Positions 10,039-64,000 of a stretch of DNA of 64,000 nt are shown in pieces. Location of the stretch: NCBI GenBank assembly GCA_002269645.1, contig NIVC01001984.1:124001-188000 (forward strand), given 5' to 3'. Each line of letters opens with the position of its first letter. The stretch's first letter is position 1. A program made the translations under genes and the position numbers. The notes beneath the pieces were generated by a model. It ran no database searches. It saw nothing but the letters and a program-made list of their open reading frames with translations, and was not told where the DNA came from. This stretch comes from Macrostomum lignano (Eukaryota).

Positions 10039-10244
10039 GGCGAGCCTTTGACCAAGTCGGACTTCTAGTCTGAGCTGGATGGATGCTCAGAGATCCGGGG
10101 GGATCTTAAGTAGGGCTTGCAGACGCTCTGAGATTGGCTTACCATTGTGATGGGATTCTGCTTTTGTAGTGAGCCGTGGAGTAGAGGAGAGGCAGAAGAG
10201 GCTGAGAGGCAACGCCCTTCTAGTTTCTAATAATTCCCCAGTAG

Positions 10245-34334: not shown

Positions 34335-35762
34335 TGGCGTCATGGCGCCACTCTCAACTGAAATGGCGCCCCTCTCAACTGAAATGGCGCCACTCTCAAC
34401 TGAAATGGCGTCACTCTCAACTGAAATGGCGCCACTCTCAACTGAAATGGCGTCACTCTCAACTAAAATGGCGCCACTCTCAACTGAAATGGCGTCACTC
34501 TCAACTAAAATGGCGCCACTCTCAACTGAAATGGCGCCACTCTCAACTGAAATGGCGTCACTCTCAACTGAAATGGCGCCACTCTCAACTGAAATGGCGT
34601 CACTCTCAACTAAAATGGCGCCACTCTCAACTGAAATGGCGCCACTCTCAACTGAAATGGCGCCACTCTCAACTGACATGGCGCCACTCTCAACTGACAT
34701 GGCGACACTCTCAACTGACATGGCGCCACTCTCAAATGACATGGCGCCACTCTCAACTGAAATGGCGCCACTCTCAACTGACATGGCGCCACTCTCAACT
34801 GACATGGCGCCACTCTCAACTGACATGGCGACACTCTCAACTGACATGGCGCCACTCTCAACTGAAATGGCGCCACTCTCAACTGACATGGCGCCACTCT
34901 CAACTGACATGGCGCCACTCTCAACTGAAATGGCGCCACTCTCAACTGACATGGCGCCACTCTCAACTGAAATGGCGCCACTCTCAACTGAAATGGCGCC
35001 ACTCTCAACTGACATGGCGCCACTCTCAACTGACATGGCGCCACTCTCAACTGACATGGCGCCACTCTCAACTGAAATGGCGCCACTCTCAACTGACATG
35101 GCGCCACTCTCAACTGAAATGGCGCCACTCTCAACTGAAATGGCGCCACTCTCAACTGACATGGCGCCACTCTCAACTGACATGGCGCCACTCTCAAATG
35201 ACATGGCGCCACTCTCAACTAAAATGGCGCCACTCTCAACTGACATGGCGCCACTCTCAACTGAAATGGCGCCACTCTCAACTGACATGGCGCCACCCAA
35301 AACTGAAATGGCGCCACTCTCAACTAAAATGGTGCCACTCTCAACTGACATGGCGCCACTCTTAAATGACATGGCGCCACTCTCAACTAAAATGGTGCCA
35401 CTCTCAACTGACATGGCGCCACTCTTAAATGACATGGCGCCACTCTCAACTAAAATGGTGCCACTCTCAACTGACATGGCGCCACTCTTAAATGACATGG
35501 TGCCACTCTCAACTGACATGGCGCCACTCTCAACTAAAATGGCGCCACTCTCAAATGACATGGTGCCACTCTCAACTGACATGGTGCCACTCTCAACTGA
35601 AATGGCGCCACTCTCAAATGACATGGCGCCACTCTCAACTGAAATGGCGCCACTCTCAACTGACATGGCGCCACTCTCAACTGAAATGGCGCCACTCTCA
35701 AATGACATGGCGCCACCCAAAACTGAAATGGCGCCACTCTCAACTAAAATGGCGCCACTCTT
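34335..35762. repeat. 21-bp minisatellite (ACTGAAATGGCGCCACTCTCA)
   Basis: About 68 units with polarised variants (AAATG at 5', ACATG in the middle, GGTGCC at 3'). Confidence 0.97.
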
Positions 35763-36289
35763 AACTTTCTGAATTTGAAATTTGAGATATTCTGAAATAT
35801 GACGAGACGGCAACGCCAGTTCTTTATGAAGTCGCATCTGCTGTTGCGCTGGCTATTTGGCAGAGAATTTCCGATTCGATCTGCCCAGGGTAACAGGATT
35901 CTCTCCTACGCTGACCAAGTAAGTTCGCGGTTAATCCCGACAAAACACTCCTCGACGATTACTGGAGCGTGTAAAAAGAGTTAGCAGGACCCGAGTCGGC
36001 CTCTCTTTGCCAAGAAACTCTGCGCTGGTCACTTCGTGCATTTGAGCAAGAATATCTCACCCTTGGGGGATCAGGGTGAGATGAGGAAGATGGGGAGAGA
36101 GGGAGAGAGAAAGACAGGCAGCTCGGCATAAAAATTAGCCTCATCCTTGTGAGCAGTCCAGCCTCCTCCCCCCCTCGACAGATGAGGCAGCTGACAGTGA
36201 GAACTGCAAAAAACAGTCCCATGTAGCTTAACTAATTTAGTGAGGGGTGAGGGGTTGGGTTTAGGAGATGAGGCCTAGCATCTTCCGTT

Positions 36290-38509: not shown

Positions 38510-38976
<467 letters not shown>

Positions 38977-40002: not shown

Positions 40003-40281
<279 letters not shown>

Positions 40282-40924: not shown

Positions 40925-43900
40925 CTACTGACTGACATCGACGGTGCTGGCAACTTGATTTTCAACTCCGGCCGTCACGCCATCCTTAGCTGGCCTAGAT
41001 TAAAGTTTTTCAATGTTAGGCGAAATCAAAATGAATGTACTGGTTTGAAAAAATGGTTAAATGGTAAAAAATTCGGAATCCTTGAAAGGCAGTCGGAGCT
41101 CTTGTACGTGACAAAGGTCACATAATAAATGTAAGCGCGTGACCTTGGGATCCTGTCGTGATGTGACGATTGACCTTGTAGGCACGCGTTGATTAGGTGG
41201 GAAAATGGGACTCTAAGGTATGACCCTAGACGCGTAGATCTCGTGCGTGAATTTAAGTGCAAGAGCGTGACCTTGAAATCACGCGCTGATTGCGTGTGAC
41301 TTAAATGTACACTGTAAGCACGTGACCTTGAAACCACATATAGACGGCGTGCTAGAATTCAATTACCAGCGCTTGACCTTGAGATCACGCGCTGATTGCG
41401 AGACCTTGCGAGTTAACGTGAAAACAGAAAATGCGACTGTTCTAGCACGTGACGTGGCCCGTACAGCTTCAAAAGCTTTGTTTTACTTACGTGTTCATCT
41501 GTTTTAGCTTTTCTCGATACTTGTCGCTTTCCAGCCAGAAGGCCTCCACAGGCGGGCCCCAGTCGGGCGTCTCCTTGAGAGCGGCCGTCAGTCCACCCCG
41601 ACGCCAGACCTCGTAGATTCCGCAGCAGGGGATGAAGAGCACAGAGCCAACCATCATTAGCCAGCACATCGCTTCGCCCCAAATGGTGAACGGCTCCGAG
41701 TTGTAGCTTGGCGATTGGTACTTGACCAGAGAGAAGATCGCAATGAACTGCGGGTTGGTTGACGTTTTTTAGTAGGCGCATCGGTGTAGGATCACATGAC
41801 AAAAAGATGATAAGGGATTTCTGCTTGCAACGCATCCACAATCTACGTCTCGTGGTTTACTTAGGCCCTACAAGAGATTGTCTCCCATTTTTAGCCAGAA
41901 TAGAAAATAGAACTTTGAACCAGCTTGTTAGGACTTAAAAATTCAGAAGTCCTAACTTCTTCAGGTTCTCAAATTAGCGGTTCCTTAACAGTTTGAAGTA
42001 GAAGTGATTGCAAAAAAACTTTTCGGTTTTAAAGTGACCTAGAATAACGCGTAGAATACTCGTACGTCTTTAACAAGCACGAGAGAAAAGTCACGTGACA
42101 AAAGATTAGATCAGCATCGGCAGAATCTTTAAGCAACCTTGCAGCGACCTTGGATCACGCAGTCAACGCGTGCTTTGACAAAAATTTATTAAAAACTTAC
42201 CAAAATGAGAGCCGGAGTGATCCCAAACCAACAGGCGATCCAGTAAGGCCCCGGACGGAATCCCAGCATCATCTGAATGTCGTTCAGAAAGTTTTTAATC
42301 CCGTACAGGTATGAGATTCCGAGCATCTCTACGAGAGCAACAACGAACAGGTTATAGTAAGCGCAGTAGTCGTTAAGCATTGAGAAATAGTAAATTCCTC
42401 CAGGACAGCACATTGGAATGCCAAGCAGAAACATGACAAGGCACACGACTGACTTGAATATTGCCTGCTTAGTGAAGTTCTCCTGCAACCAGGGCCACTC
42501 GTCCATGCAAGCGGTCAGCACAGTTTCAACCATGGCAAATTGCGAATCGACGCCCAGCGTTAGGATCATGATGAAGAACAGCACGCTCCAAAGCGGAGCG
42601 ACGGGCATGGCGGCGAGGCCCTCGGGATAGGCGACGAACGCCAGGCCCGGACCGCTCTTGGTCACCTCGGCCACCGGCAGGCCCGTCTTGTGCGCCATGA
42701 AACCGATCACCGAGAAGATGGCGAAACCGGCGAATATTGACGTGCCGCTGTTGATGCCCGCTACGATGAGGGCGTCTCTGCAATTGGTAAGTTTGCTTGG
42801 TTTTATAGTGCAGTTCGAACTGTGTGCCCCTTTTTTCAACACAATTTGTGCTGTCAACGCTATTGCGTTGTGTGCCCAAAACTTCCACAAAGTTCAGACC
42901 GGTTTTAGAGGTATTAGTGTAGTGTCAGGTGAGATTGTTGCCTTAATTTCTCGTTGTCCAACATGTACTCTCTGTGGCTTGGGGTTTGGCTTGTAAGCCC
43001 GGGCCGATTTCATGCACAAGTCCCAACACACACGTGGAGATTTAACCCAGGGATATTTTAGCGCGAAAGAGACTGATGAGTGACGCATTTACCACTGAAC
43101 TCATCTGCCTTTGTCTTCGGATCTTTAATCAAATATTTAAAGAGAATGCATTCAGTAAAATTACATCAAGGTGTTGCCATCATTATTAATTGTCGTTTTT
43201 ATAAGCGCCGTCATTTTAATAGTAGCAATGACTACTCGTATTTGTTGAAATAAGCGACTCACTTGTAGCAATTGTTCCGAAACTTGTTATAACTGGACAT
43301 GGTCGTCAGGCAGCCGAAGGCGACGCCAAGCGAGTAGAAAATCTGCACCGCCGCCGCAGACCAGATCTTGAAAACAAATTTCCAGGAATTGCGGCTTCTA
43401 AATAAACACTTAACACCTGCTGTTAAGCAGAGCCAAAACAGATTAATTACCTCAGATGTAAGTAGCAGGCTGAAGTCCGGTTTCAAGTAGAATATGATGC
43501 CCTCCTTGGCGCCCTCCAGCGTTGCGCCGCGGATGAGGAGAATCACCAGCACGAGATAGGGAAACGTGGCGGTGAAGTACACCACCTGGGGAGGTGAAGG
43601 CAGCGCTATATGCAGCGGTATGCATTAACGAGTCCGTCAGCTCAGTAGGGTATTTACAGAAACTTTCACGACTATAAGATCGGTGTTCCATGAGCTTCAC
43701 ATGTGATTCAGCCTGACAGGTTCTGTCAATCCAGCTATTAATCACGCATTCATCCTGTTAGATTAATGTGTCAGTATGGTCTCCTCTATCTATATAGTTA
43801 TATATATACATTTTAGTTGTTAGATAAACTTTCAGAAGATGTATCTAATAGGTAAAAAGTTTTTCTTAACACACTGTCTACCTGTTAGACACACTTTCTA

Positions 43901-46900
43901 CCTGTAAGATAAACCCACTACCTGTTACGCTCGTATATAACTCTTCTATCGGTTGGATACGTAATTATTTCGCCTGTCAGAGTCGTGACTTCAAGACTAT
44001 GACCTGACCAATGTAAACACAATTTCAGATGCATAGCTAAAGTACAAACCTTGACCTGACCACTGTAAACACAATTTCAGATGCATTGCTAAAGTACAAA
44101 TCTTGACTTGACCACTGTAAGCACAATTTCAGACGCATTGCTTAAGTACAAACCTTGACTTGACCACTGTAAGCACAATTTCAGATGCAATGCTAAAGTA
44201 CAAACCTAGACCTGACCACTGTAAACACAATTTCAGATAGATTGCTAAAGTACAAACCTTGACTTGACCACTGTAAACACAATTTCAGATGCATCGCTAA
44301 AGTACAAACCTTGACCTGACCACTGTAAACACAATTTCAGATAGATTGCTAAAGTACAAACCTTGACTTGACCACTGTAAACACAATTTCAGATGCATCG
44401 CTAAAGTACAAACCTTGACCTGACCACTGTAAACACAATTTCAGATAGATTGCTAAAGTGCAAACCTTGACTTGACCACTGTAAACACAATTTCAGATGC
44501 AATGCTAAAGTACAAACCTTGACCTGACCACTGTAAACACAATTTCAGATAGATTGCTAAAGTACAAGCCTTGACCTGACAACTGTAAACACAATTTCAG
44601 ATGCATCTCAAAAGCACAAACCTTCCCAGAAGTCTTGACTCCCTTGAGCAGGCACGCGTAGATGATGATCCAGGCCAACAGCAGGCACAAGGTCACGTGC
44701 CATTGCGGCGGTCCGATGGGGTCGGACATTTTCTTGATTGCTCCGTTTAAACTGGTGTAGCCCAGCATCACTCGTCTGCGCAAAGTTAAAAAGTTGAAAG
44801 GTTAAACATCAAGTTTCAGGAATGTCAGACAAGAAATTAAAACAAAAATACTGAATCAGTTTAATTGCACCTTCACTTACTCAAAGTACTGCTCGCTCGG
44901 AGTTTGATATTGAGTACAGTTGGTCTTTAAATCCTGGGAGCAGGCCTCCGGATTAGCTGTTATCGTTTAATCAAGAGTTTGGCTTAGTTTAGCTTGGAAA
45001 AGTTATTTACAGGCACTGAACAGTAGTTTGTGAGTAGCATCAGGTGCATATTGCCTTAGAAAGTAATTTTTCGTTGAAAATGGCGTCATTATCTTTAATG
45101 TTCATACCTAAGTCGCTTCTTGGGAAATTCTAAGGACGCCTCAAGATTTCGGTGCTTCCTTGACAACATCGTGGCACTTACCTGACTGATCTTGGCGCTA
45201 GTCTGACCTGATCTTGGCGCTAGTCTGACCTAATCTTGGCGCTAGCCTCACCTGATCTCGGCGCTACCCTGACCTGATCTTGGCGCCACCCTCACCTAAT
45301 CTTGCCGCTAGCCTCACCTGATCTTGGCGCTACCCTCACCTGATCTCGGCGCTACCCTCACCTGATCTTGGCGCTACCTTGATCTGATCTTGGCGCTACC
45401 CTCACCTGATCTCGGCGCTACCCTCACCTGATCTTGGCGCTAGCCTCACCTGATCTTGGCGCTAGCCTGACCTGATCTTGGCGCTACCCTGACCTTATCT
45501 TGGCGCTACTTTGACCTGATCTTGGCGCTACCCTCACCTGATCTTGGCGCTAGCCTCACCTGATCTTGGCGCTACCCTCACCTGATCTTGGCGCTAGCCT
45601 CACCTGATCTTGGCGCTACCTTGATCTGATCTTGGCGCTAGTCTGACATCCCAAATATCCAAAATCCAAGACGCTTACGATTGAAACCGGCTCTGAGATT
45701 CCCGGGCACATTGTGAGTGGCGTTGGTGGTGTTGACGCTGAGGTCCCGGCAGTGAAAGTCGTTCCAATAGTTGTTGCAATCCGCCCAGGGCACCTTGGAG
45801 TTGAATGAGGCGAACAGGTAGAACAGGGCCCAGGCTATGATCACGTTGTAGTAGATGGAGACCAGCGCTGAGATGCTGACCATCGCCCAGCCCGTGCCTG
45901 CGGGGTGGCGGTTGTTGAGCAGTGAAACTGAGTTTAGCTGAGAAATTGACTGAGTCTTCGGGATTCTTGGATAGCCAGGGAAGCACTTCGGTTCGCAACT
46001 TCCGGAGCAGGGACTTCAGGACTTCAGGAGCTGGGTAGTTGCAACTTCAAAAACAGGAGTGACCCAGATGAATAGCCTCAGACTAAGTACAACAGAACTT
46101 CAGGAACTGGGTAGTTGGAACTTCAGGAACAGGTGTGACCCAGGTGAATAACCCCAGCCTCAGTCAAACAGAACTTAAGGAACAGGTGTGACCCAGGTAA
46201 ATAACCCCAGCCTCAGTCAAACAGAACTTCAGGAACAGGTGTGACCCAGGTGAATAACCTCAGCCTCAGTCCAACAGAGCTTCAGGAACAGGTGTAAACC
46301 AGGTGAATAACCTCAGCCTCAGTCCAACAGAACTTCAGGAACAGGTGTGACCCAGGTGAATAACCTCAGCCTCAGTCAAACAGAACTTTCAGGAACAGGT
46401 GTGACCCAGGTGAATAACCTCAGCCGCAGTCCAACAGAACTTCAGGAACAGGTGTGACCCAGGTGAATAACCCCAGCCTCAGTCAAACAGAACTTCAGGA
46501 ACAGGTGTGACCCAGGTGAATAACCCCAGCCTCAGTCAAACAGAACTTCAGGAACAGGTGTGACCCAGGTGAATAACCCCAGCCTCAGTCAAACAGAACT
46601 TCAGGAACAGGTGTGACAGAGGTGAATAACCTCAGCCTCAGTCCAACAGAACTTCAGGAACAGGTGTGACAGAGGTGAATAACCTCAGCCTCAGTCAAAC
46701 AGAACATCAGGAACAGGTGTGACCCAGGTGAATAACCCCAGCCTCAGTCAAACAGAACTTCAGGAACAGGTGTGACCCAGGTCAATAACCTCAGCCTCAG
46801 TCCAACAGAACTTCAGGAACAGGTGTGACTCAGGTGAATAACCTCAGACGCAGTCCAACAGATACCTTTCAGCAGCGGGCACGCCTTCCAGATGGTGACG

Positions 46901-47791
46901 GGGCCGAGGTTGCCGAACTGACCAAACGCCACCTCCATGTAGAACAGCGGCAGGGCGGCGACACCCAGCATGATCAGGTAGGGGATCAGAAAGGCACCTC
47001 CGCCGTTCTTATAGCACAGGTAGGGGAAGCGCCACACGTTGCCGAGGCCCACGGCGTAGCCGATGCAGGACAGCAGGAAGTCGAACTGGCCGGTCCAGTT
47101 TCCGCGAGCCTCGTTCTCGTCAGCTGCCTCGCCTTCGCCCGCCTGCGGGGCCTCCGCGCTGTTGGATGCGTTCTGCCGGGTGGGGATAGTGTGGGGAGTG
47201 ACTTGTAGAGTGACTTGAGGAGTGACTTGTGGAGTGACTTGAGGAGTGACTTGTGGAGTGACTTGAGGAGTGACTTGTGGAGTGACTTGTGGAGTGACTT
47301 GTGGAGTGACTTGTGGGGTGACTTGTGGAGTGACTTTTAACTTGTGGAGTGACATGCTGAGTGACATGTGAAGTGACTTGTGGAGTAACTTTTGGAGTGA
47401 ATTGCGGAGTGACTTGTGGAGTGAACTGGGGAGTGACTTGTAGAGTGACTTGGGCTGTAAACTTGTCGAATGACATGTGGAGTGAATTGTGAAGTGACTT
47501 TTAGAGTGACATGTGGAGTGACTTGTAGAGTGACTTTTTTAGTGACATGTGGAGTGACTTGTAGTGTGAAAGCGGAAGATAGAGTGACTGAAAGATGAGA
47601 GTGACGGTTTTTCAAGTGCCACTTCCTTAGAGGGATAATGCTAAATGAGACTGACCATTTCGTTACTATAGTAAACCTATTTTGAAAGATTTTTTTATCG
47701 ATCAGCAAGTTGCAGGCACCGTATCAGAGTCTGGAGTGAATGTATCGAATTAGGAAGGAAAGACTTTTCAAGGTCAAATGGAACTCACCAT
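40925..47791 (-). CDS. SLC6 Na+/Cl- dependent amino-acid transporter (proline/glycine-type subfamily), copy A, ~633 aa; exons 47791-47789 (ATG), 47172-46866, 45897-45679, 44956-44881, 44775-44622, 43585-43451, 43366-43263, 42777-42201, 41747-41491, 40994-40925
   Basis: [100 protein letters not shown]. All introns are GT-AG and the exon lengths sum to 1902 nt, ending in TAG. TM1 has Gly where monoamine transporters have Asp. An in-frame upstream ATG near 47869 could extend the N-terminus. Confidence 0.93.
44000..44600. repeat. 52-bp intronic minisatellite of SLC6 copy A (~11 units); inverted paralogous array at 52740-53000 (~5 units)
   Basis: Unit on the gene strand AAGGTTTGTACTTTAGCAATGCATCTGAAATTGTGTTTACAGTGGTCAGGTC. 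Confidence 0.93.
45185..45640. repeat. 22-bp minisatellite (CCTGATCTTGGCGCTACCCTCA); inverted paralogous array at 51290-52160
   Basis: Tandem units in the homologous intron of both SLC6 copies. Confidence 0.93.
46070..46860. repeat. 53-bp minisatellite (TTCAGGAACAGGTGTGACCCAGGTGAATAACCTCAGCCTCAGTCCAACAGAAC); inverted paralog at 49962-50650
   Basis: Tandem units starting almost at the donor site in both copies. Confidence 0.93.
47195..47560. repeat. 12-bp minisatellite (GGAGTGACTTGT); inverted paralog at 49275-49635
   Basis: Lies in the first intron of each SLC6 copy; explains the VTPQ/SHST/SLHK ORFs. Confidence 0.92.
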
Positions 47792-49030
47792 CTGAATGTC
47801 GATCTGCTGAGTTCTGAAACGTTGCCCGCAGCTCAACAGACCCGTAAAAGTCTGTGCGACTCGTTTCATTTTAACAAAAACTGAAATCAATTTTTTCTTA
47901 AATCATTTTTGAACCAGTTTTTCAGCGGCTCTTTTTCTGAACCGGAAATTTCCGGATCTCAAGCAAAGTGGAAATTTTTTTTATTTTTTTGTTATACTCA
48001 GTTGCACTTTTGCAAAAGAAAATCAAAGAGCAACAGAACTAAAAATTAAGATACACTCTGAATGCCGGGTTTTACCATAGACTATTCGCACATAGGCTAA
48101 TGGAATGAAAAATTCGAATTATCTTCGAGTGTTGACTTCTTTATATTTATACCTTTTCATACATTGCTTTCAATTTGCATTCTGTGCATTCTTAATAATT
48201 ATTTCACCTTGACGATTCTATTAAAAAAGATCATAAATTATGAATGTTTGTTACCGAATTTACATATTTATGCGTCGGAAATTTGGTTGACTTCACGCAA
48301 GCAGACCAAGACCGGGTCTGTGTCGGTCAGCCATAGCCCCACATCGTTTCTCCACAACACTTTCCGTCTACACCTGACCTTAATTATCTTTAATAGAGGT
48401 TTTGCCATTAAAATATTTATTAGTCTACTTTACTCAATAGTTTATGCAAGTAAACTAAATTTTACATTAACAAGCGAGTTTTCATCTCCTTCTCACTTAC
48501 TCTTAGTAGGCTAGTTTAGCATTTTTCTTATTTATTTATTCTGTGGCCCAGCTGGTCTTTTTAATGGCTCAGAGTGTCGTTAAGGTTCAAGTTAGCCCTG
48601 GCGAAAGCATTTGACAGATTCATTAAAACTAATCTTCTTGAGATATGCTGGCTCTTGCAGTCATTGACAAAACTCGGTGGCTAAAGCTATCTGTATTCCA
48701 TATCTTCCGAATGATATGATATAAAATTATGAACGATATTTAAACTGGTTTGCTGCTAAATGTCTAGGGCGAAACTTCTTTTGAAATTTTGCTCTAATTT
48801 ATTTATTTATTTTGTTTTTCAAAAGTACAAATATGAACTCGGTTAAAACATCTCGTTCAATTCTGTTTTTCAGATTCTGAAAATTTAAGTTAAAAAAACC
48901 CGCATTTAATAAGTTGTTTGTGTTCTATGTTTTCTTCAACAAAATAAAGAAGAAGCAAGTTGCAGATTCTGTTACGGGGCTCTTCGGCTGCGTGCAAGGT
49001 TTCAGAACTCATTGTCAAGTCCAAATGCAT

Positions 49031-52000
49031 ATGGTGAGTCACCACTTATACTATAGCACATGATTTACCTGTCACTTCACCAAGTGTGAGAGACGGTCAG
49101 TAAATTTACCACACCTATGGTTTTTGCGAAACAGTTGTCACTCTTTAAAAACGGTCACTTCAAATCGGTCAATCAATACAGCGGATACTTTACAACTGTA
49201 CTTTACAACTGTCACTCTAGAGACAGTCACTGTTATCTACGAGTAAAAGTGTCACTTATTCCACAGGTTTCCCTCCACAAGTCACCCACAAATCACTCCA
49301 AAAGTCACTCCACAAGTCAAAATTCACTCCACAAGTCACTCCACAAGTCACTCCACAAGTCACTTAACAAGTCACTCCACAAGTCAAAAGTCACTCCACA
49401 AGTAACTCCACAAGTCACTTAACAAGTCACTCCACAAGTCAAAAGTCACTCCACAAGTAACTCCACAAGTCACTCTACGAGTCACTCCACAAGTCACTCC
49501 ACAAGTCACTCCACAAGTCACTCTACAAGTCACTCCACAAGTCACTCCACAAGTCACTCCTCAAGTCACTCCACAAGTCACTCCTCAAGTCACTCCACAA
49601 GTCACTCCTCAAGTCACTCTACAAGTCACTCCCCACACTATCCCCACCCGCCAGAACGCATCCAACAGCGCGGAGGCCCCGCAGGCGGGCGAAGGCGAGG
49701 CAGCTGACGAGAACGAGGCTCGCGGAAACTGGACCGGCCAGTTCGACTTCCTGCTGTCCTGCATCGGCTACGCCGTGGGCCTCGGCAACGTGTGGCGCTT
49801 CCCCTACCTGTGCTATAAGAACGGCGGAGGTGCCTTTCTGATCCCCTACCTGATCATGCTGGGTGTCGCCGCCCTGCCGCTGTTCTACATGGAGGTGGCG
49901 TTTGGTCAGTTCGGCAACCTCGGCCCCGTCACCATCTGGAAGGCGTGCCCGCTGCTGAAAGGTAACTGAAGTTCTGTTAGACTGAGGCTGAGGTTATTGA
50001 CCTGGGTCACACCTGTTCCTGAAGTTCTGTTAGACTGAGGCTGAGGTTATTGACCTGGGTCACACCTGTTCCTGAAGTTCTGTTGGACTGAGGCTGAGGT
50101 TATTCACCTGGTCAAACCTGTTCCTGAAGTTCTGTTGGACTGAGGCTGAGGTTATTGACCTGAGTCACACCTGTTCCTGAAGTTCTGTTGGACTGAGGCT
50201 GAGGTTATTCACCTGGGTCACACCTGTTCCTGAAGTTCTGTTGGACTGAGGCTGAGGTTATTCACCTGGGTCACACCTGTTCCTGAAGTTCTGTTGGACT
50301 GAGGCTGAGGTTATTCACCTGGGTCACACCTGTTCCTGAAGTTCTGTTTGACTGAGCCTGAGGTTATTCACCTGGGTCAAACCTGTTCCTGAAGTTCTGT
50401 TGCACTGAGGCTGAGGTTATTCACCTGGGTCACACCTGTTCCTGAAGTTCTGTTAGACTGAGGCTGAGGTCATTCACCTGGGTCACACCTGTTCCTGAAG
50501 TTCTGTTTGACTGAGGCTGAGGTCATTCACCTGGGTCACACCTGTTCCTGAAGTTCTGTTAGACTGAGGCTGAGGTTATTCACCTGGTCAAACCTGTTCC
50601 TGAAGTTCTGTTTGACTGAGTCTGAGGTTATTCACCTGGGTCACACCTGTTCCTGAAGCTCTAACTACCCTGTTCCCGTAGCGCCAACTACCCTGTTCCT
50701 GAAGCTCCAACTACCAGTTCCTGAAGCTCTAACTACCCTGTTCCTGAAGCTCCAACTACCCTGTTCCCGTAGCGCCAACTACCCTGTTCCTGAAGCTCTA
50801 ACTACCTGTTCCTGAAGCTCTAACTACCCTGTTCCTGAAGCTCTAACTACCTGTTCCTGAAGCTCCAACTACCCTGTTCCTGAAGTCCTGAAGTCCCTGC
50901 TCCGGAAGTTGCGAACCGAAGTGCTTCTCCGGCTGTCCAAGAATCCCGAAGCCTCAGTCAATTTCTCAGCTAAACTCAGTTTCACTGCTCAACAACCGCC
51001 ACCCCGCAGGCACGGGCTGGGCGATGGTCAGCATTTCAGCGCTGGTCTCCATCTACTACAACGTGATCATAGCCTGGGCCCTGTTCTACCTGTTCGCCTC
51101 ATTCAACTCCAAGGTGCCCTGGGCGGATTGCAACAACTATTGGAACGATTTTCACTGCCGGGACCTCAGCGTCAACATCACCAACGCCACTCACAATGTG
51201 CCCGGGAATCTCAGAGCCGGTTTCAATCGTAAGCGTCTTGGGTATTGGAAATTTAGGATATCAGACTAGCGACAAGACCAGTTCAAGGTAACGCCAAGAT
51301 AAAATCAGGGTAGCGCCAAGATCAAATGAGGCTAGCGCCAAGTTCAGGTGAGGCTAGCGCCAAGATCAGGTCAGGGTTGCGCCAAGATCAGGTGAGGCTA
51401 GCGCCAAGATCAGGTGAGGGTAGCGCCAAGATCAGGTGAGGCTAGCGCCAAGATCAGGTGAGGGTAGCGCCAAGATCAGATGAGGCTAGCGCCAAGATCA
51501 GGTGAGGGTAGCGCCAAGGTCAGGTGAGGCTAGCGCCAAGATCAGGTCAGGGTTGCGCCAAGATCAGGTGAGGGTAGCGCCAAGATCAGATCAAGGTAGT
51601 GCCAAGATCAGGTGAGGGTAGCGCCAAGTTCAGATCAAGGTAGTGCCAAGATCAGGTGAGGGTAGCGCCAAGATCAGATCAAGGTAGCGCCAAGATCAGA
51701 TCAAGGTAGAGCCAAGATCAGGTGAGGCTAGCGCCAAGATCAGATCAAGGTAGCGCCAAGATCAAGTGAGGCTAACGCCAAGATCAGGTGAGGGTAGCGC
51801 CAAGATCAGGTGAGGGTAGCGCCAAGATCAGGTGAGGGTAGCGCCAAGATCAGGTGAGGGTAGCGCCAAGATCAGGTGAGGCTAGCGCCAAGATAAAATC
51901 AGACTAGCGCCAAGATCAGATGAGGCTAGCGCCAAGTTCAGGTGAGGCTAGCGCCAAGATCAGGTGAGGGTAGCGCCAAGATCAGATCAAGGTAGCGCCA

Positions 52001-55000
52001 AGATCAGGTGAGGCTAGCGCCAAGATCAGATGAGGCTAGCGCCAAGATCAGATCAAGGTAGCGCCAAGATCAGGTGAGGCTAGCGCCAAGATCAGGTGAG
52101 GGTAGCGCCAAGATCAGATCAAGGTAGCGCCAAGATCAGGGTAAGGCTAGCGCCAAGATCAGTCAGGGAAGTGCAACGATGTTGTCAAGCAAGCACCGAA
52201 ATCTTGAGGCGTCCTTAGAATTTCCCAGCGAAGCGCTTTAGGTATGATTTTAAAGATAATGACGTCATTTTCAACGAAAAATTACTTTTTAAGGCAATAT
52301 GCAGCTGATGCTACTCACAAACTACTGTTCAGTGCCTGTAAATAACTTTTCTAAGCTAAACTAAGCCAAATTCTTGATTAAACGATAACAGCTAATCCGG
52401 AGGCCTGCTCCCAGGATTTAAAGACCAACTGTACTCAATATCAAACTCCGAGCGAGCAGTACTTTGAGTAAGTGAAGGTGCAATTAAAACTGATTCAGTA
52501 TTTTTGGGTCAATTTCTCGGCTGACATCCCTAAATCTTGATGTTTAACTTTTCAACTTTTTAACTTTTTAACTTTGCGCAGACGAGTGATGCTGGGCTAC
52601 ACCAGTTTAAACGGAGCAATCAAGAAAATGTCGGACCCCATCGGACCGCCGCAATGGCACGTGACCTTGTGCCTGCTGTTGGCCTGGATCATCATCTACG
52701 CGTGCCTGCTCAAGGGAGTCAAGACTTCTGGGAAGGTTTGTGCTTTTGAGATGCATCTGAAATTGTGTTTACAGTAGTCAGATCAAGGTTTGTACTTTAG
52801 CAATGCATCTGAAATTGTTTTTAAATTGGTCAGGTCAAGGTTTGTACTTTAGCATTGCATCTGAAATTGTGTTTACAGTGGTCAGGTCAAGGTTTGTACT
52901 TTAGCAATGCATCTGAAATTGTGTTTACAGTAGTCAGGTCAAGGTTTGTACTTTAGCAATGCATCTGAAATTGTGTTTACAGTTGTCAAGTCAAGGTTTG
53001 TGTGTTTGTGATGCACCTGATATTGTGTTTACAGGTCTGTGAGGTCGTGACTCTGACTTGTAAATAAACGGGTCTGACAGCTAGACGTGTTTGAAAACAC
53101 GTGTGTTAAAAGGTGACATTACAGATGACATTTGGTATTGATAATGCCGGTACTATCTGACGAATAAACGGACGCTGTCTTCACCTTCCCAGGTGGTGTA
53201 CTTCACCGCCACATTTCCCTATCTCGTGCTGGTGATTCTCCTCATTCGCGGCGTCACGCTGGAGGGCGCCAAGGACGGCATACTTTTTTACTTGAAACCG
53301 GACTTCAGCCTGTTACTTACATCTGAGGTGATCTGTTTTGGTTTTGCTAACAGCAGGTGTTAAGTGTTTATTTAGAAGCCGCAATTCCTGGAAATTTGTT
53401 TTCAAGATCTGGTCTGCGGCGGCGGTGCAGATTTTCTACTCGCTTGGCGTCGCCTTCGGCTGCCTGACGACCATGTCCAGTTATAACAAGTTTCGGAACA
53501 ATTGCTACAAGTGAGTCGCTTAGCTCAATGAGTCTGCTTCTTTTAGCGATCAATAAAGTAACGTTTATTGCTACGTAATCTCGCCACCAGTGATGGATGC
53601 AGTTCTAAAACTGGGGGGGGAGTGCCCTTGCGCACAAAATTGACCTCATGTTACGTCGTCTGACTCTCGAGAAACCGAGTGCTTACATGCCTGTCAATGA
53701 GAAACTCAGAGTCTCTGTACACCTTGAATGAGCATAACTTTTCATCCTCAACAAACCCAACGATCGTCACTGCAGAGATGTCCTCATCGTAGCGGGCATC
53801 AACAGCGGCACGTCAATATTCGCCGGTTTCGCCATCTTCTCGGTGATCGGTTTCATGGCGCACAAGACGGGCTTGCCGGTGGCCGAGGTGACCAAGAGCG
53901 GTCCGGGCCTGGCGTTCGTCGCCTATCCCGAGGGCCTCGCCGCCATGCCCGTCGCTCCGCTGTGGAGCGTGCTGTTCTTCATCATGATCATAACGCTGGG
54001 CGTCGATTCGCAGTTTGCTTTCGTTGAGAATGTGCTCACGACTTGCATGGACGAGTGGCCCTGGTTGCAGGAGAACTTCACTAAGCAGGCAATATTCAAG
54101 TCAGTCGTGTGCCTTGTCATGTTTCTGCTTGGCATTCCAATGTGCTGTCCTGGAGGAATTTACTATTTCTCAATGCTTAACGACTACTGCGCTTACTATA
54201 ACCTGTTCGTCGTGGCTATCGTAGAGATGCTCGGAATCTCATACCTGTACGGGATTAAAAACTTTCTGAACGACATTCAGATGATGCTGGGATTCCGTCC
54301 GGGGCCTTACTGGATCGCCTGTTGGCTTGGGATCACTCCGGCTCTCATTTTGGTAAGATTTCCTCAAACTAGAGTTGAAAGCAGACGTGGGGTGGATTCA
54401 AAATAATTTCAAGGTCACTTGAAGTTGCTGTTGTTATTTTCGTCGTTATAGTTAAAAGCTGTTGACACGTGACTTATCTTACGTTCAAGAAGCCTGAGTG
54501 AAAGTAGTTTTAAGGCTGTAACTTTTTGGCAACTTCTGCGGGTATGTCACGACCCAGTTATGATGATTGAACATGTACGCTCGTATGTCGGAACATGCAA
54601 TAAGCAAAAATTCAAATGTAGCCTTAGTCAGCTTAACTAAGGACCTCATCAATCGCGTGCGCACACGTTAGAAGCAGTCTTCTCGCGCACCGGATAAATT
54701 AAAGAGTACATGTAGCTTCATACTTTTCTGTCTCTGGCTTACTATAGTTAGTCGACATAAGATTTTTACGGTAGCGCATCTTAAAATCGATGTCAATCAA
54801 CCCGCAGTTCATTGCGATCTTCTCGCTGGTCAAGTACCAATCGCCAAGCTACAACTCGGAGCCGTTCACCATTTGGGGCGAAGCGATGTGCTGGCTGATG
54901 ATGGTTGGCTCTGTGCTCTTCATCCCCTGCTGCGGAATCTGCGAGGTCTGGCGTCGGGGTGGACTGACTGCCGCTCTCAAGGAGACGCCCGATTGGGGCC

Positions 55001-55732
55001 CGCCTGTGGAGGCCTTCTGGCTGGAAAGCGATAAGTATCGAGAAAAGCTGAAACAGATGAACACGTAAGTAAAACAAAGCTTTTGAAGCTGTACGGGCAT
55101 TGATTTTTTGTTCCAAGATAGCGTACATTGATTTCTGACATTCACGCGATCAACGCGTGATCTCAAGGTTTGCAAACCTACACAGTGTACATTTATTCCA
55201 AGCACGATTAACATTAAGGGCGTACGCTTGATTTCAAGGTCACAGCGCTTGAATCTAATTTTAACGCGCGATCAACGCGTGATTTCAAGGTCACCAGCCT
55301 ACGCTGTGCGGCACACATTTAATTGACACCACATACGCGTGATTTCTACGTAACACGCTTGGATGTACTTGAAATTCTCTCATGCAATCAACGGCGTGAT
55401 TCAAGGGTCAACCACTTAAACAAATTCTAACACGTGATCAACGTGTGGATTTATAGGCCTCAAGAAAGCGTATGTTACGAGCTATATCTAGATACACACC
55501 AATGCAAGGAACCACTTCAAAATTAAAATGATATATAAATTCAAGGAATGTTAAAATGTACCAGCAAACCCTCTTTAGTTATTTTCTGTGCATAATTTAC
55601 ATTCACGTCAATCTTCTCGACTATATTTAACTAACTGTCAGGCCAGCTACAGATCCCGTGACAGGACATGAAAACCGGCCGGGTGTTGACGATTTCAGCC
55701 AGCCCTCGAACACGAAGGAAACCAAAACGTAA
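49031..55732 (+). CDS. SLC6 amino-acid transporter, copy B (inverted paralog of copy A), ~640 aa; exons 49031-49033 (ATG), 49655-49961, 51010-51228, 52392-52467, 52582-52735, 53193-53327, 53407-53510, 53776-54352, 54808-55064, 55642-55732
   Basis: Internal exon lengths are identical to copy A (307, 219, 76, 154, 135, 104, 577, 257). GT-AG introns; total 1923 nt, ending in TAA at 55730-55732. Confidence 0.93.
50650..50885. repeat. ~23-bp minisatellite (CCTGTTCCTGAAGCTCTAACTAC), expanded only in SLC6 copy B
   Basis: About 10 units; copy A has only 2-3 degenerate units at ~46020-46130. Confidence 0.88.
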
Positions 55733-57442: not shown

Positions 57443-60400
57443 TTAAACAAAGCTGGCTTCAGTGTACGGACTAAATGGAGCTCTCTGCTGCATCGCGTGC
57501 AACTGCTGTTGCTGCGTCTGCTGCAATGGAAATCCCGCGGATTTTCCGTCGACACTGAACCCGCCTCGGGGCAGAGTGTGGCTCTGCCGGCGCGGCTGGG
57601 GTGTCGATAAGACGGCGCGATTTCCGCCGACACCGCCGCGGCCCTCGATTTCGTAATAACGATGCGACATTGGCTGTTGCTGCTGTTGCAGAGTCTGCTT
57701 TTTCTGGCCTTGGCTGGGCTGATGCTGCTGTTGCGATGAAGAGTCCAGAGTCTGGTAGTGCTGAGACAGCGGCTGACGGCGGGACGAAACAGCGACAGTT
57801 GACTGGCGGGGAAGCTCCGAGTCAGTGGCACCGCCTGGAAGGTGAAATGATCGGGATCCACCCAGATTTGATTTGAGATCTACTCAGCACTGAATCGGGA
57901 TCTACTCAGCACTGAATCGGGATCTACTTAACACTGAATCGGGATCTACTCAACACTGAATTGGGATCTAATCAAAATTGAATTTGGATCTACTCAGGAT
58001 TATTGAATCAGGATCTACTCAGCACTGAATCGGGATCTACTCAACACTGAATCGGGATCTACTCAGCACTGAATCGGGATCTACTCAACACTGAATCGGG
58101 ATCTACTCAGCACTGAATCGGGATCTACTCAGCACTGAATCGGGATCTACTCAGCACTGAATCGGGATCTACTCAACACTGAATCGGGATCTATTTAACA
58201 CTTAATTGGGATCTACTCAGCACTGAACCGGGATCTACTCAGCACTGAATCGGGATCTACTCAGCACTGAATCGGGATCTACTCAACACTTAATTGGGAT
58301 CTACTCAGCACTGAACCGGGATCTACTCAGCACTGAATCGGGATCTACTCAACACTGAATTGGGATTTACTCAACACTTAATTGGGATCTACTCAGCACT
58401 GAATTGGGATCTACTCAACACTGAATTGGGATTTACTCAACACTTAATTGGGATCTACTCAGCACTGAATTGGGATCTACTCAGCACTGAATCGGGATCT
58501 ACTCAACACTGAATTGGGATCTACTCAACACTGAATCGGGATCTACTCAGCACTGAATCGGGATCTACTCAACACTGAATTGGGATTTACTCAACACTTA
58601 ATTGGGATCTACTCAGCACTGAACCGGGATCTACTCAGCACTGAATCGGGATCTACTCAACACTGAATTGGGATTTACTCAACACTTAATTGGGATCTAC
58701 TCAGCACTGAATTGGGATCTACTCAGCACTGAATCGGGATCTACTCAACACTGAATTGGGATTTACTCAACACTTAATTGGGATCTACTCAGCACTGAAT
58801 TGGGATCTACTCAACACTGAATTGGGATTTACTCAACACTTAATTGGGATCTACTCAGCACTGAATTGGGATCTACTCAGCACTGAATCGGGATCTACTC
58901 AACACTGAATTGGGATCTACTCAACACTGAATCGGGATCTACTCAGCACTGAATCGGGATCTACTCAACACTGAATTGGGATCTACTCAACACTGAATTG
59001 GGATCTACTCAGCACTGAATTGGGATCTACTCAACACTGAATCGGGATCTACTCAACACTGAATCGGGATCTACTCAGCACTGAATCGGGATCTACTCAA
59101 CACTGAATCGGGATCTACTCAACACTGAATCGGGATCTACTCAGCACTGAATCGGGATCTACTCAACACTGAATCGGGATCTACTCAGCACTGAATCGGG
59201 ATCTACTCAGCACTGAATCGGGATCTACTCAGCACTGAATCGGGATCTACTCAGCACTGAATCGGGATCTACTCAGCACTGAATCGGGATCTACTTAGCA
59301 CTGAATTGGGATCTCAGGAACAATCCTGAGCAGCAATAACAGGTGTCACTCACCCAGACTCAGACTAGCTGAAGAGTACAGCCGATCCCGAGTGACAGTC
59401 GCGTGTTTGAGTTTGTTAAGCTGAAGCATCTGCTGCTGGTGCTGCAACTGCTGAGCGCTGCTGTAGGCTCCGTAATCATCCTGTGTTACAAATTGTGTTA
59501 CAATATTATTTTTCATGACAAACTGTGGCAGGTTCTAATGCGATTTAGCTGGCCAAGTTTTAATTGGGGATTTGGATTAGGGATCTCTTTTAGTGAATTC
59601 TATCTGATTTGTACTTCCCGACTGCGCTGTCTATCTTCTCTCCCTCTCCTCTCTGCCTTGCCTCCTCTTGCTCTCTTCTTTCCCTCTTTTCTCTCCCTCT
59701 TTTCTCTCCTCTCCCTCTCCTCTCTCCTTACTCTGCTCCCTATCCCCCTCTCTACCTCTCCCCTCTCCTCCTCTCTCCTCTCCCTCCCCTCTTCACCTCT
59801 TCTCTCCCTCTCCCCCTCCCCTTTTCCTCTCTCCTCTCCATCCCTCTCCCTCTCTTCTCTCCATTCTCCCTTCCCTTTTATCATTCTACTCCCCTTAATT
59901 ACACACTCAACACCGGCAACCTCATCTCACCCCATCCTCAACTTTCTTTCATGTTGATCGCAAACGTTTCCCATTTAGCAACCATTTTTTCCTACAACTA
60001 TCACCATCCTCCCCTTTATCTACATCACTAATCATTGATGCTCAAAGCTCCATTTCTTTCTCCTTTGCATTGGACACAAAGAACTGATTTTGAACTTGCA
60101 TACTTGCTCCAACCTAAAGCTAGACCTGCCCCAACTCAAACACTCATTAATAATAACCAGTTTAAAAAAATCAGTCATATCCAATCCATACGAAAAATAT
60201 ACCAACTAAAGTATAAAAAATATGAAGCTCATAAAATCTATACACAAGGGACTACGAGTATAAATATTCTCGTTAGGCGAGAGGATCCGACACAAAATTA
60301 ATACTCTCTCGTATCACCCCGGCGTCCCCAATAAAATCAGTCCGAGAGCTGCATCATTAATCTACTGGGCAACAAATTAGTTATAACAAAAAAGATAGCC

Positions 60401-63400
60401 AGTCCCCTCTGTATGCAGCAGTGGGTTCTGAGTCCGCTCGAGCGGTCAAGACTTTAATCAGGATGAACAAAAAGTACTCAAGGGTTACCCCCGCTACTTA
60501 CAGTTTATATCCCCTGTGACCCTGTCGCTTCAGTTTTTCCCAGACTCATACCCTTCATTTAACTTTACCTTGATTTATTAAGTTTACTATTTACAGAATT
60601 AATAAAATAAAATTTACCTCAACGTTGAAGTTTGTCTTATAAGTTGGCGGGCAGTAATAAGGACTTTGCTGGTCAATCATCTTTGCGTGCACACTGTCGG
60701 GATCTGAAGTTGAGCATTGTTTATTGGGATTTTTTACAAAATTAAATCCTTTTTATTTATGCTTTATTGGGATCAATGAGATTGGGATCTGTGAGATTGG
60801 GATCTGTGAGATTGGGATCTGTGAGATTGGGATCTGTGGGATTGGGATTTGTGAGATTGGGATCTGTGGGATTGGGATCTGTGAGATTGGGATCTATAGG
60901 ATTGGGATCTGTGGGATTTGGGATCTGTGGGATTGGGATCTGTGAGTGAGATTGGGATCAATGAGATTGAGATCTGTGAGATTGGGATCTGTGAGTGAGA
61001 TTGGGATCTGTGAGTGAGATTGGGATCAATGAGATTGAGATCTGTGAGATTGGGATCTGTGGGGTTGGGATCTGTGGGGTTGGGATCTGTGGGGTTGGGA
61101 TCTATGGGGTTGGGATCTGTGGGATTTGGATCTGTGAGATTGGGATCTGTGAGATTGGGATCTGTGAGATTGGGATCTATGAGATTGGGATCTGTGGGAT
61201 TTGTGGGATTGGGATCTGTGAGTGAGATTGGGATCTGAGGGGTTTGGGATCTATGAGATTGGGAGCTGTGAGATTGGGATCAATGAGATTGGGATCTGTG
61301 AGATTGGGATCTGTGGGGTTGGGATCTGTGGGGTTGGGATCTGTGAGATTGGGATCTGTGATGTTGGGATCTGTGGGATTGGGATCTGTGGGATTGGGAT
61401 CTGTGAGATTGGGATCTGTGAGATTGGGATCTGTGGGGTTGGGATCTGTGAGATTAGAATCTGTAGGATTGGGATATGTAAGATTTAATACTGTTTTCAG
61501 CTCCTCACCGACTTCAGTCGCCAGCCTCCCAGCTTGGAGGGTGCCAGTTCCGCAGGCGGCACCAGCAGCCCCAGCAGCAGCCGCTGTCCTGCTATTCAAT
61601 GCAGCGGCCGAGGCCCTTCGCCGGACAATGAGGCAGACGATAGCAAAACAAGCTGCAACCAGCAGCAGCAGTGTCACCACCAGGCAGATGATGACGGACT
61701 CGTTGCTGAACGCCAACAGCGACCCATTCCCGTAGTTATTGACATTGTGCGGCGATCGGCCATTTGTCAAGCTGGAGTCGCCTCCTCTGAAGGCAGCGTC
61801 GGCCGCAGTCTGGGCCGGGATCTCCGCTCGATATTCAACCGGTTGAGAGCACATACGGGGCTGGCCTAGGTCGCAGGCTCGAATGCTGAGAGGCAATTTG
61901 ATGCTGTGAGTAGATTGGCCAGGTAATTGTCGGATGTTGTGCAGAGGCTGGCTGACCAGGATGCTGCCCGTGTCCGAGTGAACGCCGAACCGCTGGTCTG
62001 AGCTGTTCAAGAGCTCGTACACCACCTGCGAGAGGGAGGTGGAGAAGGAGAGATGAGATAAAAATGGCACGGATTTAATTTTTTCTTAGCGACTTGGGAA
62101 TTTAGAAACTTGGATATTATAAATTATGGGTTCTGTGGGGTTGGGATTTGGGATCAATTGGATTGGGATCTGTGAGATTGGGATCTGTGGGATTGGAATC
62201 TGTGGGGTTGGGAGCTGTGTTATTGGAATCTGTGAGATTGGGATCTGTGGGATTGGGATCTGTGGGATTGGGATCTGTGGGATTGAGATCTGTGAGATTG
62301 GGATCTGTGGGATTGGGATCTGTGGGATTGGGATCTGTGGGGTTGGGAGCTGTAAGATTGGGATCTGTGGGATTGGGATCTGTGGGATTGGGATCTGTGG
62401 GATTGGGATCTGTGGGATTGGGATCTGTGGGGTTGGGAGCTGTGTTATTGGAATCTGTTAGATTGGGATCTGTGAGGTTGGGAGCTGTGTTATTGGAATC
62501 TGTGAGATTGGGATCTGTGAGGTAGGGATCTGTGGGATTGGGATCTGTGGGGTTGGGAGCTGTGTTATTGGAATCTGTGAGATTAGAATTTGTGGGAATG
62601 GGATCTGTGAGGTAGGGATCTGTGGGATTAGGATCTGTGAGGTAGGGATCTGTGAGATTGGGATGTGGGATTGGGAACTGTGGGGTTGGGATCTGTGTTA
62701 TTGGAATCTGTGAGATTGGGATCTGTGGGATTGGGATCTGTGGGATTGGGATCTGTGGGATTGGGATCTGTGAGATTGAGATCTGTGGGATTGGGATCTG
62801 TGGGGTTGGGAGCTGTGAGATTGGGATCTGTGGGATTGGGATCTGTGGGATTGGGATCTGTGGGATTGGGATCTGTGGGGTTGGGAGCTGTAAGATTGGG
62901 ATCTGTGGGATTGGGATCTGTGGGATTGGGATCTGTGGGGTTGGGAGCTGTGTTATTGGAATCTGTGAGATTGGGATCTGTGAGGTTGGGAGCTGTGTTA
63001 TTGGAATCTGTGAGATTGGGATCTGTGAGGTTGGGAGCTGTGTTATTGGAATCTGTGAGATTGGGATCTGTGAGGTAGGGATCTGTGGGATTGGGATCTG
63101 TAGGGTTGGGGGAGCTGTGTTATTGGAATCTGTGAGATTAGAATTTGTGGGATTGGGATCTGTGAGGTAGGGATCGGTGGGATTGGGATCTGTGAGGTAG
63201 GGATCTGTGAGATTAGGATGTGGGATTGGGAACTGTGGGGTTGGGATCTGAGGGGTTGGGATCTAAAGGATTAGGATCTATAGTATCTATAGGATCCTGG
63301 TCTGGGATCTCTGTGATTTTCAGTTTACAGCTAAGGTATTTACAGCTGAGCACACAGAGCTCAGTGTCCCGAACCTTCTGGTTAATTCCCTCATCCGGGT

Positions 63401-63630
63401 CATCGGCCACCACATGGCCGATCCGGTGTCCGGGCTCCAGTTGATTGACAACAAACTCGGCTGGAAACTCTGGCGGATCAATTCGCAGCGAAGGCGCATT
63501 GTCGTTGACGTCGTCCACAGTGATGGTCACGTGACAGGTGCCGGTGAGTTGCAGACCTCGTTGCTGAGGCTGGTCCTCCGCCAGGACGCGAAAGGAATAG
63601 TGGGATCGGAGCTCGCGGTCCAGGGCCGCT
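57443..63630 (-). CDS. Protocadherin-like cadherin-superfamily protein, 3' part; exons 63630-63375, 62025-61509, 60703-60618, 59480-59354, 57834-57443; 5' exons outside window
   Basis: Cadherin motifs LDRE, DVNDNAP, ADDPDEGINQK|VVYEL, ACDLGQP; TM segment VIICLVVTLLLLVAACFAIVCLIV followed by RRR. Intron phases 0,1,0,1 are all compatible. C-terminus TEASFV* looks like a PDZ ligand. Confidence 0.88.
57880..59310. repeat. 22-bp minisatellite (GGATCTACTCAGCACTGAATCG)
   Basis: About 64 units in the last protocadherin intron. Confidence 0.97.
59620..59940. repeat. CT-rich polypyrimidine low-complexity tract
   Basis: Direct reading of the sequence. Confidence 0.85.
60765..61480. repeat. 15-bp minisatellite (ATTGGGATCTGTGAG/GGG)
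   Basis: Tandem units in a protocadherin intron. Confidence 0.95.
62125..63320. repeat. 15-bp minisatellite, same family as 60765-61480
   Basis: Tandem units in the neighbouring upstream intron. Confidence 0.95.
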
Positions 63631-63689
63631 CTGGGTGCGATGGCAAGATGTATAATTGTAAATACATTTAACTAACCAGCTAAGGCATG

Positions 63690-64000
63690 TATCAAATAAT
63701 CTGTCAGATCAATTTATCAAATACATTAGATTATTTATTAATACGAGTAAATCAATCAATCAATCAGATTAATCAATAAATTCGATCAATCAATCAATAC
63801 ATTTGATCAGCCAATCAGATCAACCAATCAATCAAAAACTTAATCAATCAGAGCAATCAATCAATCAGATCAATTGTTCAATCAATCAGAGCAATCAATC
63901 AATCAATCAATGAATCAATCAATCAATCGTATCAAACAATGAATGAATGAATGAATGAATCAATCAATTAATCGTATCAAACAATGAATGAATGAATCAA
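63690..64000. repeat. Degenerate (AATC)n/(AATG)n microsatellite
   Basis: Direct reading of the sequence. Confidence 0.85.

Follow-up and report, generated by a model that had tools for sequence, protein, structure and literature searches.

We analysed a 64,000-nucleotide (nt) stretch of the Macrostomum lignano genome (hereafter, the window) that carries two intact SLC6 transporter genes, gene A (Mlig012780g2) and gene B (Mlig012133g2), lying head-to-head as the arms of an inverted duplication. The pair is a mosaic: some segments, introns included, are nearly identical between A and B, whereas others can no longer be aligned, and when the pair was compared on three scaffolds of the assembly, the near-identical segments carried polymorphisms shared by A and B, whereas the diverged segments carried differences fixed between them. 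With good confidence, we regard repeated interlocus gene conversion acting on an old inverted duplication as the best explanation of this pattern. A sequence-only reading of the window had already proposed an old duplication that is being homogenised in patches, and the intron classes, the synonymous divergence, and the contrast between fixed and shared sites described below all agree with that proposal.

The window is identical to positions 124001–188000 of scaffold NIVC01001984.1 in assembly Mlig_3_7 (GCA_002269645.1), and a window position equals the position in our locus record L002 (the NIVC01001984 record) plus 39024. The coding sequences of A and B rebuilt from the window translate exactly into the deposited proteins without internal stops, all introns are GT-AG, and the internal exons have the same sizes in both genes (307, 219, 76, 154, 135, 104, 577, and 257 nt). 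Transcription of the two genes diverges from the center, where their 5′ ends lie, and the inverted similarity between the arms was recovered by blastn as high-scoring segment pairs (HSPs) with E = 0. A head-to-head inverted pair of intact genes, as described in the sequence-only reading, is therefore present, and the outer coordinates given there are the two stop codons. The same reading had described two intact arms of ~7 kb with identical exon structure; this holds for the exons, which number 10 in each gene with equal internal sizes, but not for the arms as a whole, because alignability is not uniform. Only ~3.6 kb and a few exon-sized patches can be aligned, and the longest HSP between the arms has 86.6% identity over 2.5 kb. 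The spacer between the start codons (Table 1) is presumed to be a divergent promoter region. Local alignment detected no inverted homology between the two halves of the spacer above that of shuffled sequences (z = 2.7), and none downstream of the stop codons of A and B (z = 1.5). The proteins are identical at 608 of 635 aligned residues; from exon 2 to exon 9 they differ at only 12 residues, and the N-terminus and the C-terminal tail also differ.

Differences between A and B are spread unevenly among the exons. None was found in exon 2 (0/307 nt), exon 4 (0/76), or exon 7 (0/104), one in exon 5 (1/154), and three in exon 3 (3/219), compared with 10/135 in exon 6, 18/577 in exon 8, and 7/257 in exon 9. 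Exons 2–5 together thus contain 4 differences in 756 nt, and exons 8 and 9 are each 97% identical. The by-eye counts of the sequence-only reading for six of these exons (those of 307, 219, 76, 154, 104, and 257 nt) were all reproduced in our recount. The spread exceeds that expected by chance (chi-square 33.2, permutation P = 1.4e-4). The same contrast was observed in synonymous divergence (dS), which was 0.015 for exons 2–5 and 7 and 0.11 for exons 6, 8, and 9 (Fisher P = 1.5e-4). By exon, dS was 0.23 in exon 6, 0.08 in exon 8, and 0.12 in exon 9, compared with 0.02–0.06 between subgenomes, and the 307 nt of exon 2 contained no synonymous difference. At the ends of the genes, the first exons, previously estimated as about 75% similar, are 70–78% identical, varying with the alignment, and the last exons, previously called very divergent, encode different tails. 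The exon 1 homologue in B reaches upstream to ~48950, where it is non-coding; because exon 1 of B lost the upstream ATG and the start codon moved, the N-terminus of B is MHM at the place where A has 27 residues.

The introns fall into two classes of neutral divergence within one gene pair. The unique parts of introns 2, 3, 4, and 6 are 87–97% identical between A and B, whereas the remaining intron segments described here are either unalignable or ~30% diverged. Introns 2–4 lie within a first putative conversion tract (tract 1), which runs from the 12-bp minisatellite of intron 1 through exons 2–5 to the end of the 52-bp minisatellite of intron 5 and is alignable throughout, with 91–100% identity over ~3.6 kb, introns included; around exon 2, a stretch of 478 nt is 99% identical and takes in ~160 nt of intron 1. 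A second putative tract (tract 2) begins 35 nt before the end of exon 6, takes in intron 6 (95% identical) and exon 7, and ends 18 nt into intron 7. Outside these tracts, the 5′ part of intron 1 is ~30% diverged, with weak similarity above shuffled sequences (z = 4.1). The 3′ part of intron 5 is unalignable (z = 2.4 against shuffles), as is intron 7 (z = 2.4, a score within the shuffle range), the intron before the 577-nt exon for which the sequence-only reading had claimed exactly this. Intron 8 is also essentially unalignable, with ~50% mismatches when force-aligned and weak residual similarity only (z = 6.8). In the 3′ half of the gene, similarity ends from a few to ~35 nt beyond the exon edges. 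The minisatellites of A and B share the same unit and the same intron position but differ in copy number, and the ends of tract 1 coincide with the outer ends of the arrays in introns 1 and 5. Six-way MAFFT alignments over introns 1, 2, 3, and 5 were unstable (for intron 5, 8% in pairwise alignment versus 17–21% in the six-way alignment), and because distances across the minisatellite arrays were therefore unreliable, only unique intron segments were used to calculate distances.

The order A (minus), B (plus), cadherin-domain gene (minus) was found on three scaffolds, NIVC01001671, NIVC01001984, and NIVC01000702, which are 93–98% identical to one another, introns and spacer included, with colinear spacers. 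In the DV1 assembly, three subgenome copies (S, L1, and L2) with ~2.2% divergence at single-nucleotide polymorphisms have been reported (PMC10733133); since the three-scaffold pattern matches these, we take the scaffolds to be the three subgenome copies of the pair. In ML2, an older and separate assembly, one gene model passes through antisense A exons into B, indicating that the arrangement is present there too. Both findings indicate that the gene order did not arise by local misassembly. No inversion of the spacer or of the center was found among the three copies, all of which keep an A-type exon 1 with an A-type gene body, so the inversion polymorphism for which the sequence-only reading had proposed a check is absent from this set. 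Between subgenome copies of one paralog, introns 7 and 8 and the 3′ part of intron 5 are 0–3% diverged (0–0.6% for intron 7), whereas introns 7 and 8 are random between A and B, indicating that the duplication greatly predates the subgenome split.

Variable sites in the six genes (A and B on the three scaffolds) were sorted into differences fixed between A and B and polymorphisms shared by both, the “alleles” in this comparison being three subgenome scaffolds of a polished assembly. Fixed differences were absent from both putative tracts, where only shared polymorphisms of the two kinds were found, whereas exon 1, the first 100 nt of exon 6, and exons 8 and 9 showed the opposite pattern (counts in Table 1). 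The contrast between tract 1 (0 fixed, 17 shared) and exons 8 and 9 together (14 fixed, 1 shared) was highly significant (Fisher P = 3e-8), and if the 20 fixed coding sites were placed at random, the chance that all of them would miss exons 2–5 and 7 is 3e-6. Furthermore, at nt 108–118 of exon 6, the A-like or B-like state varies among the copies. The pair therefore shows a mosaic with sharp boundaries that includes neutral sites, both intronic and synonymous, and it combines shared polymorphisms and no fixed differences in the converted segments with the reverse in the unconverted ones, as is expected of interlocus conversion.

We infer that conversion was the process that produced this pattern. 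An SLC6 gene would have given rise to an inverted, head-to-head copy well before the whole-genome duplication that M. lignano underwent recently, and non-reciprocal copying between A and B would then have repeatedly overwritten parts of one paralog with the other. One long tract of ~3.6 kb, from the intron 1 to the intron 5 minisatellite, may have taken the introns along and erased the paralog-specific differences there, and shorter patches (~130–240 nt) may have homogenised exon 9, the greater part of exon 8, and the segment from the exon 6 3′ end to the end of exon 7. The old divergence would survive in the tails, in exon 1, in exon 6 over its first 100 nt, and in an exon 8 island of 52 nt. 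Because a conversion tract must be anchored in homology at either end and the old introns were by then too diverged to provide it, the patches in the 3′ half presumably start and stop inside exons. Diverged introns are reported to impede conversion (PMC3966223), in agreement with the boundaries in the 3′ half.

The similarity of the exons might instead reflect purifying selection alone, acting on an old pair in which protein constraint kept the exons alike and no conversion took place. Such an account fits the low ratio of nonsynonymous to synonymous divergence everywhere (dN/dS 0.04–0.23) and the 3′-half similarity that stops a few to ~35 nt from the exon edges, but we give it hardly any credence, since it leaves unexplained the lack of synonymous differences in exon 2, the range of dS among exons of one gene (0.015 versus 0.11–0.23), the high identity of the unique parts of introns 2–4 and 6 beside the unalignable introns 7–8, and the 17 polymorphisms common to both paralogs. 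It is also unlikely, although less so, that one long conversion or a partial re-duplication replaced the block of exons 2–5 shortly before the subgenome split and that nothing has happened since. The A-B distance in tract 1 (2.4–2.8%) is indeed close to the distance between subgenomes (1.6–4.1%), and comparisons within a scaffold give no smaller values than those between scaffolds. However, a single replacement before the split predicts private polymorphisms only, whereas 17 sites carry the same two bases in both paralogs; nor does it account for the differing A-like and B-like states at nt 108–118 of exon 6, and at least four patches with distinct boundaries and residual divergence are needed (tract 1, exons 6–7, the exon 8 segments, and exon 9).

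Near-identical copies could also have been homogenised during consensus building and by Pilon polishing with multi-mapping reads. Mlig_3_7 was assembled from PacBio reads with Canu (errorRate 0.04) and polished by Pilon with Illumina and RNA sequencing (RNA-seq) reads (PMC5730564); multi-mapping and chimerism are high, and the relationships of the scaffolds switch along the gene. We nevertheless consider such an artefact very unlikely as the source of the mosaic, because polishing cannot render kilobases of intron alignable in some parts of a gene while leaving others random. In addition, fixed A/B differences of 3–8% in exons 6 and 8 survive on all three scaffolds, indicating that differences of such size were not erased by polishing; the near-identity around exon 2 does not stop at the exon but runs on into intron 1; and proteins of the independently assembled ML2 carry the same copy-specific residues. 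The caveat on polishing in the sequence-only reading therefore applies to a few true differences in near-identical exons, which polishing may have removed, but not to the mosaic at the intron level.

Several observations weigh against repeated conversion as the explanation or limit its detail. For this assembly, multi-mapping is reported for 93% of read pairs and chimerism between subgenomes for 36% of scaffold length (PMC10733133), and some of the shared polymorphisms and zero-difference exons could be consensus artefacts from polishing. Much of tract 1 is minisatellite with an ambiguous alignment register, and only ~1.24 kb of unique sequence was used. Over these ~1240 nt, A and B differ at 30, 35, and 32 sites within a scaffold and at 29–37 sites between scaffolds; the equality of these distances gives no direct sign of recent, locus-private arm-to-arm events, and the intrachromosomal exchange between arms that the sequence-only reading had inferred finds no support in it, as there is no clustering within loci at this resolution. 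This comparison is itself weakened by scaffold chimerism, which also blurs the assignment of scaffolds to chromosomes. The protein search returned no orthologue from a Macrostomum species other than M. lignano and hence no outgroup, the next match being a paralog with 66% identity. The nearest scaffold pairing shifts along the locus, with A1 near A3 at the 5′ end and in introns 1–2, and A2 near A3 in intron 7, exon 8, and intron 8. Such a shift would fit recombination among the subgenome copies as well as the chimerism published for Mlig_3_7 scaffolds.

The product of gene B matched the Pfam SNF domain (PF00209) over its full length (642.7 bits against a cut-off of 27, E = 6e-193, profile positions 1–522 of 524); the query was a draft, partly mis-spliced concatenate of gene B exon translations, and A was placed through its 608/635 identity to B. 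In a search of PDB, 98 SLC6 chains matched at E < 1e-20, and the closest solved relatives were, in order, human PROT (SLC6A7; E = 5e-172), GlyT2, and GlyT1, followed by DAT, BGT1, and GAT. In the protein search, related vertebrate proline-transporter entries were ~51% identical, and the named neighbours were GlyT-like or PROT-like. Judged from these matches, A and B are predicted to be SLC6 amino-acid transporters of the GlyT/PROT/ATB0,+ type. They share with this branch of the family (GlyT1/GlyT2, PROT/SLC6A7, and ATB0,+/SLC6A14) the full-length SNF domain, the 10-residue motif of transmembrane helix 1 (TM1), and, in both copies, a Phe in TM6 aligned with F303 of PROT. At the position of PROT F403, B has the Phe, whereas A differs from the branch in having Met.

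This residue lies in the 52-nt island of exon 8 (exon nt 215–266, in TM8), which contains 8 of the 12 fixed sites of the exon (cluster test, P = 8e-5). The sites include third-codon positions, so the cluster is not just one of amino-acid changes. Four of the 12 residue differences between the proteins fall in the island, where a TM8 stretch of 18 residues was compared. In an alignment to 9wml, Met441 of A and Phe417 of B align with human PROT F403, and three residues further on, A has T444 and B has N420. According to a 2026 structural study, PROT F403 touches the pyrrolidine ring of proline and stacks on Y133; it is Leu in GlyT1, and its mutation to Ala or Leu substantially diminishes activity (PMC13402342). 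Because both copies have Phe at the F303 position and only B has Phe at the F403 position, the pocket of B resembles that of PROT at both positions, unlike that of A. Plausibly, the island was kept unconverted by selection for different transport properties. Taken jointly, the readings that selection holds the island apart as a substrate-pocket switch and that the intronic minisatellites are points where conversion starts or stops are offered tentatively, as a possibility that we rate well below even. If the selection reading is true, the locus would encode two transporters with different substrate preferences and different N- and C-terminal tails under one shared divergent promoter region; conversion would keep the remaining protein identical, and selection would block it at the helix that determines specificity.

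Table 1. Positions in the window of genes A and B, their exons, introns, minisatellites, and putative conversion tracts, with numbers of fixed and shared sites among the six genes
Feature	A	B	Fixed A/B	Shared	Remarks
Gene	40925–47869 (minus)	49025–55732 (plus)			Intact SLC6 transporters; A, PAA61967.1, 10 exons, 659 aa; B, PAA61968.1, 10 exons, 642 aa
Spacer between start codons	47870–49024				1155 nt, AT-rich, unique
Exon 1	47789–47869 (minus)	48950–49033	22	0	78 aligned nt; old, apparently unconverted
Tract 1	44000–47571 (minus)	49268–53034 (plus)	0	17	Minisatellite copy numbers differ between the sides; sites from 1236 nt of unique sequence
Minisatellite, intron 1, 12 bp	47195–47562	49273–49632
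Minisatellite, intron 2, 53 bp	46017–46862	49966–50662
Minisatellite, intron 3, 22 bp	45186–45640	51267–52162			20.7 copies in A, 40.7 in B
Minisatellite, intron 5, 52 bp	44000–44624	52733–53034			12 copies in A, 5.8 in B
Intron 5, 3′ part	43586–43999 (minus)	53035–53192			Unalignable
Exon 6, first 100 nt	43486–43585 (minus)	53193–53292	6	0	Old island
Tract 2	43245–43485 (minus)	53293–53528	0	2	Sites from exon 6 3′ end, intron 6, and exon 7 (218 nt)
Intron 7	42778–43262 (minus)	53511–53775			Unalignable
Exon 8	42201–42777 (minus)	53776–54352	12	1	Internal mosaic
Island in exon 8	42512–42563 (minus)	53990–54041			Apparently unconverted
Intron 8	41748–42200 (minus)	54353–54807			Essentially unalignable
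Exon 9	41491–41747 (minus)	54808–55064	2	0	7 differences in the window, of which the fixed ones are part
Exon 10	40925–40994 (minus)	55642–55732			C-terminal tails diverged

Some intron segments and one gene copy showed features of their own. In intron 9 (41183–41391 in A and 55225–55447 in B), which is otherwise unalignable, a degenerate repeat motif, CGCGTGATTTCAAGGTCAC, is ~65–70% similar between the paralogs (z = 35 versus shuffles) and may be a dispersed repeat or a minisatellite of old, shared origin. Intron 4 of gene B in the window (52468–52581) has 9 private substitutions and a 9-nt insertion within 105 nt, whereas the other five copies (A1–A3, B1, and B3) differ from one another by 0–2 nt and exons 4 and 5 on either side show little or no difference; this intron may be a remnant of an older B-type sequence missed by the latest conversion. 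In intron 3, an apparent haplotype block (17–20 differences, B1/B3 versus A1/B2) opens the unique 3′ part; with the border of the 22-bp array and a 26-nt insertion beside it, this block may be a register artefact, and it was not counted as evidence for independent events. The copy of gene A on NIVC01000702.1 has a 1-nt deletion at exon 8 nt 152 that shortens the annotated protein to 428 aa (PAA78200.1); either this subgenome copy is decaying or the deletion is an indel error of PacBio sequencing.

In the surroundings of the pair, a cadherin-domain gene (~1118 aa, minus strand, 57443–64000, running off the window) adjoins B in each of the three subgenome copies. The annotation shows no gene in the 10 kb past the 3′ end of A. 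The 40 kb beyond that end (window positions 1–40300) contain at least 20 minisatellite or microsatellite arrays, among them a 34-bp unit ×47 at 10244–11809, a 21-bp unit ×68 at 34342–35766, (AGAT)116 at 38511–38976, and (AGAC)69 at 40004–40280, a density that fits the tandem-repeat content of 15% reported for the M. lignano genome. A GC-rich segment at 803–2234 (59% GC) contains a 60-bp CAG/CAC-rich repeat and an array of the 14-bp CATTTCCCATCCCCA, with a strong skew of C over G. No tRNA genes were found in the window, and our literature search found no paper naming Mlig012133 or Mlig012780.

For work on these genes, the mosaic has a practical consequence. Since exon 2 is identical over 307 nt and exons 3–5 and 7 are near-identical, with three copies of each gene, reagents directed at these exons cannot separate Mlig012780 from Mlig012133; this applies to RNA interference, in situ probes, CRISPR guides, and RNA-seq quantification. 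The regions that separate A from B are exon 1, exon 6, exon 8 nt 215–266, and exon 10.

Mosaic conversion between adjacent paralogs, including head-to-head pairs, is well documented, and conversion-free segments have been read as functional divergence (PMC3966223). The A/B pair is a new, well-resolved example of this known process, which has long been documented in C. elegans, Drosophila, yeast, and mammals, and it opens no new class of mechanism. Its value is that of a worked example of how conversion and divergence partition a duplicated gene, in which diverged introns would confine the tracts to homologous exons and a short stretch around a substrate-pocket residue remains different between the paralogs. 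The closest counterparts are the hsp16-1/hsp16-48 and hsp70-7/hsp70-8 pairs of C. elegans (PMC3966223), which are likewise adjacent head-to-head duplicates with a short unique spacer. There too, homogenised segments contrast sharply with flanks that have diverged completely, tracts extend over introns in some cases and are limited by introns that have diverged, and conversion-free segments have been taken as functional divergence. The A/B pair differs from these in that the ends of its long tract lie at the outer ends of intronic minisatellites and in that it occurs in three subgenomes of a neopolyploid, so that fixed and shared differences could be compared without population data. The sequence-only reading had likened the pair to Y-chromosome palindromes. 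The likeness, which extends to palindromes of the X, holds for the inverted arms and the short unique spacer, a geometry that permits non-reciprocal exchange without deletion of a copy, but it does not hold for the arms themselves. Those of Y palindromes measure tens of kb to Mb and are >99.9% identical throughout, whereas the A/B arms of ~7 kb are a mosaic of segments that are unalignable or 86–100% identical, and both their inner and outer ends are old.

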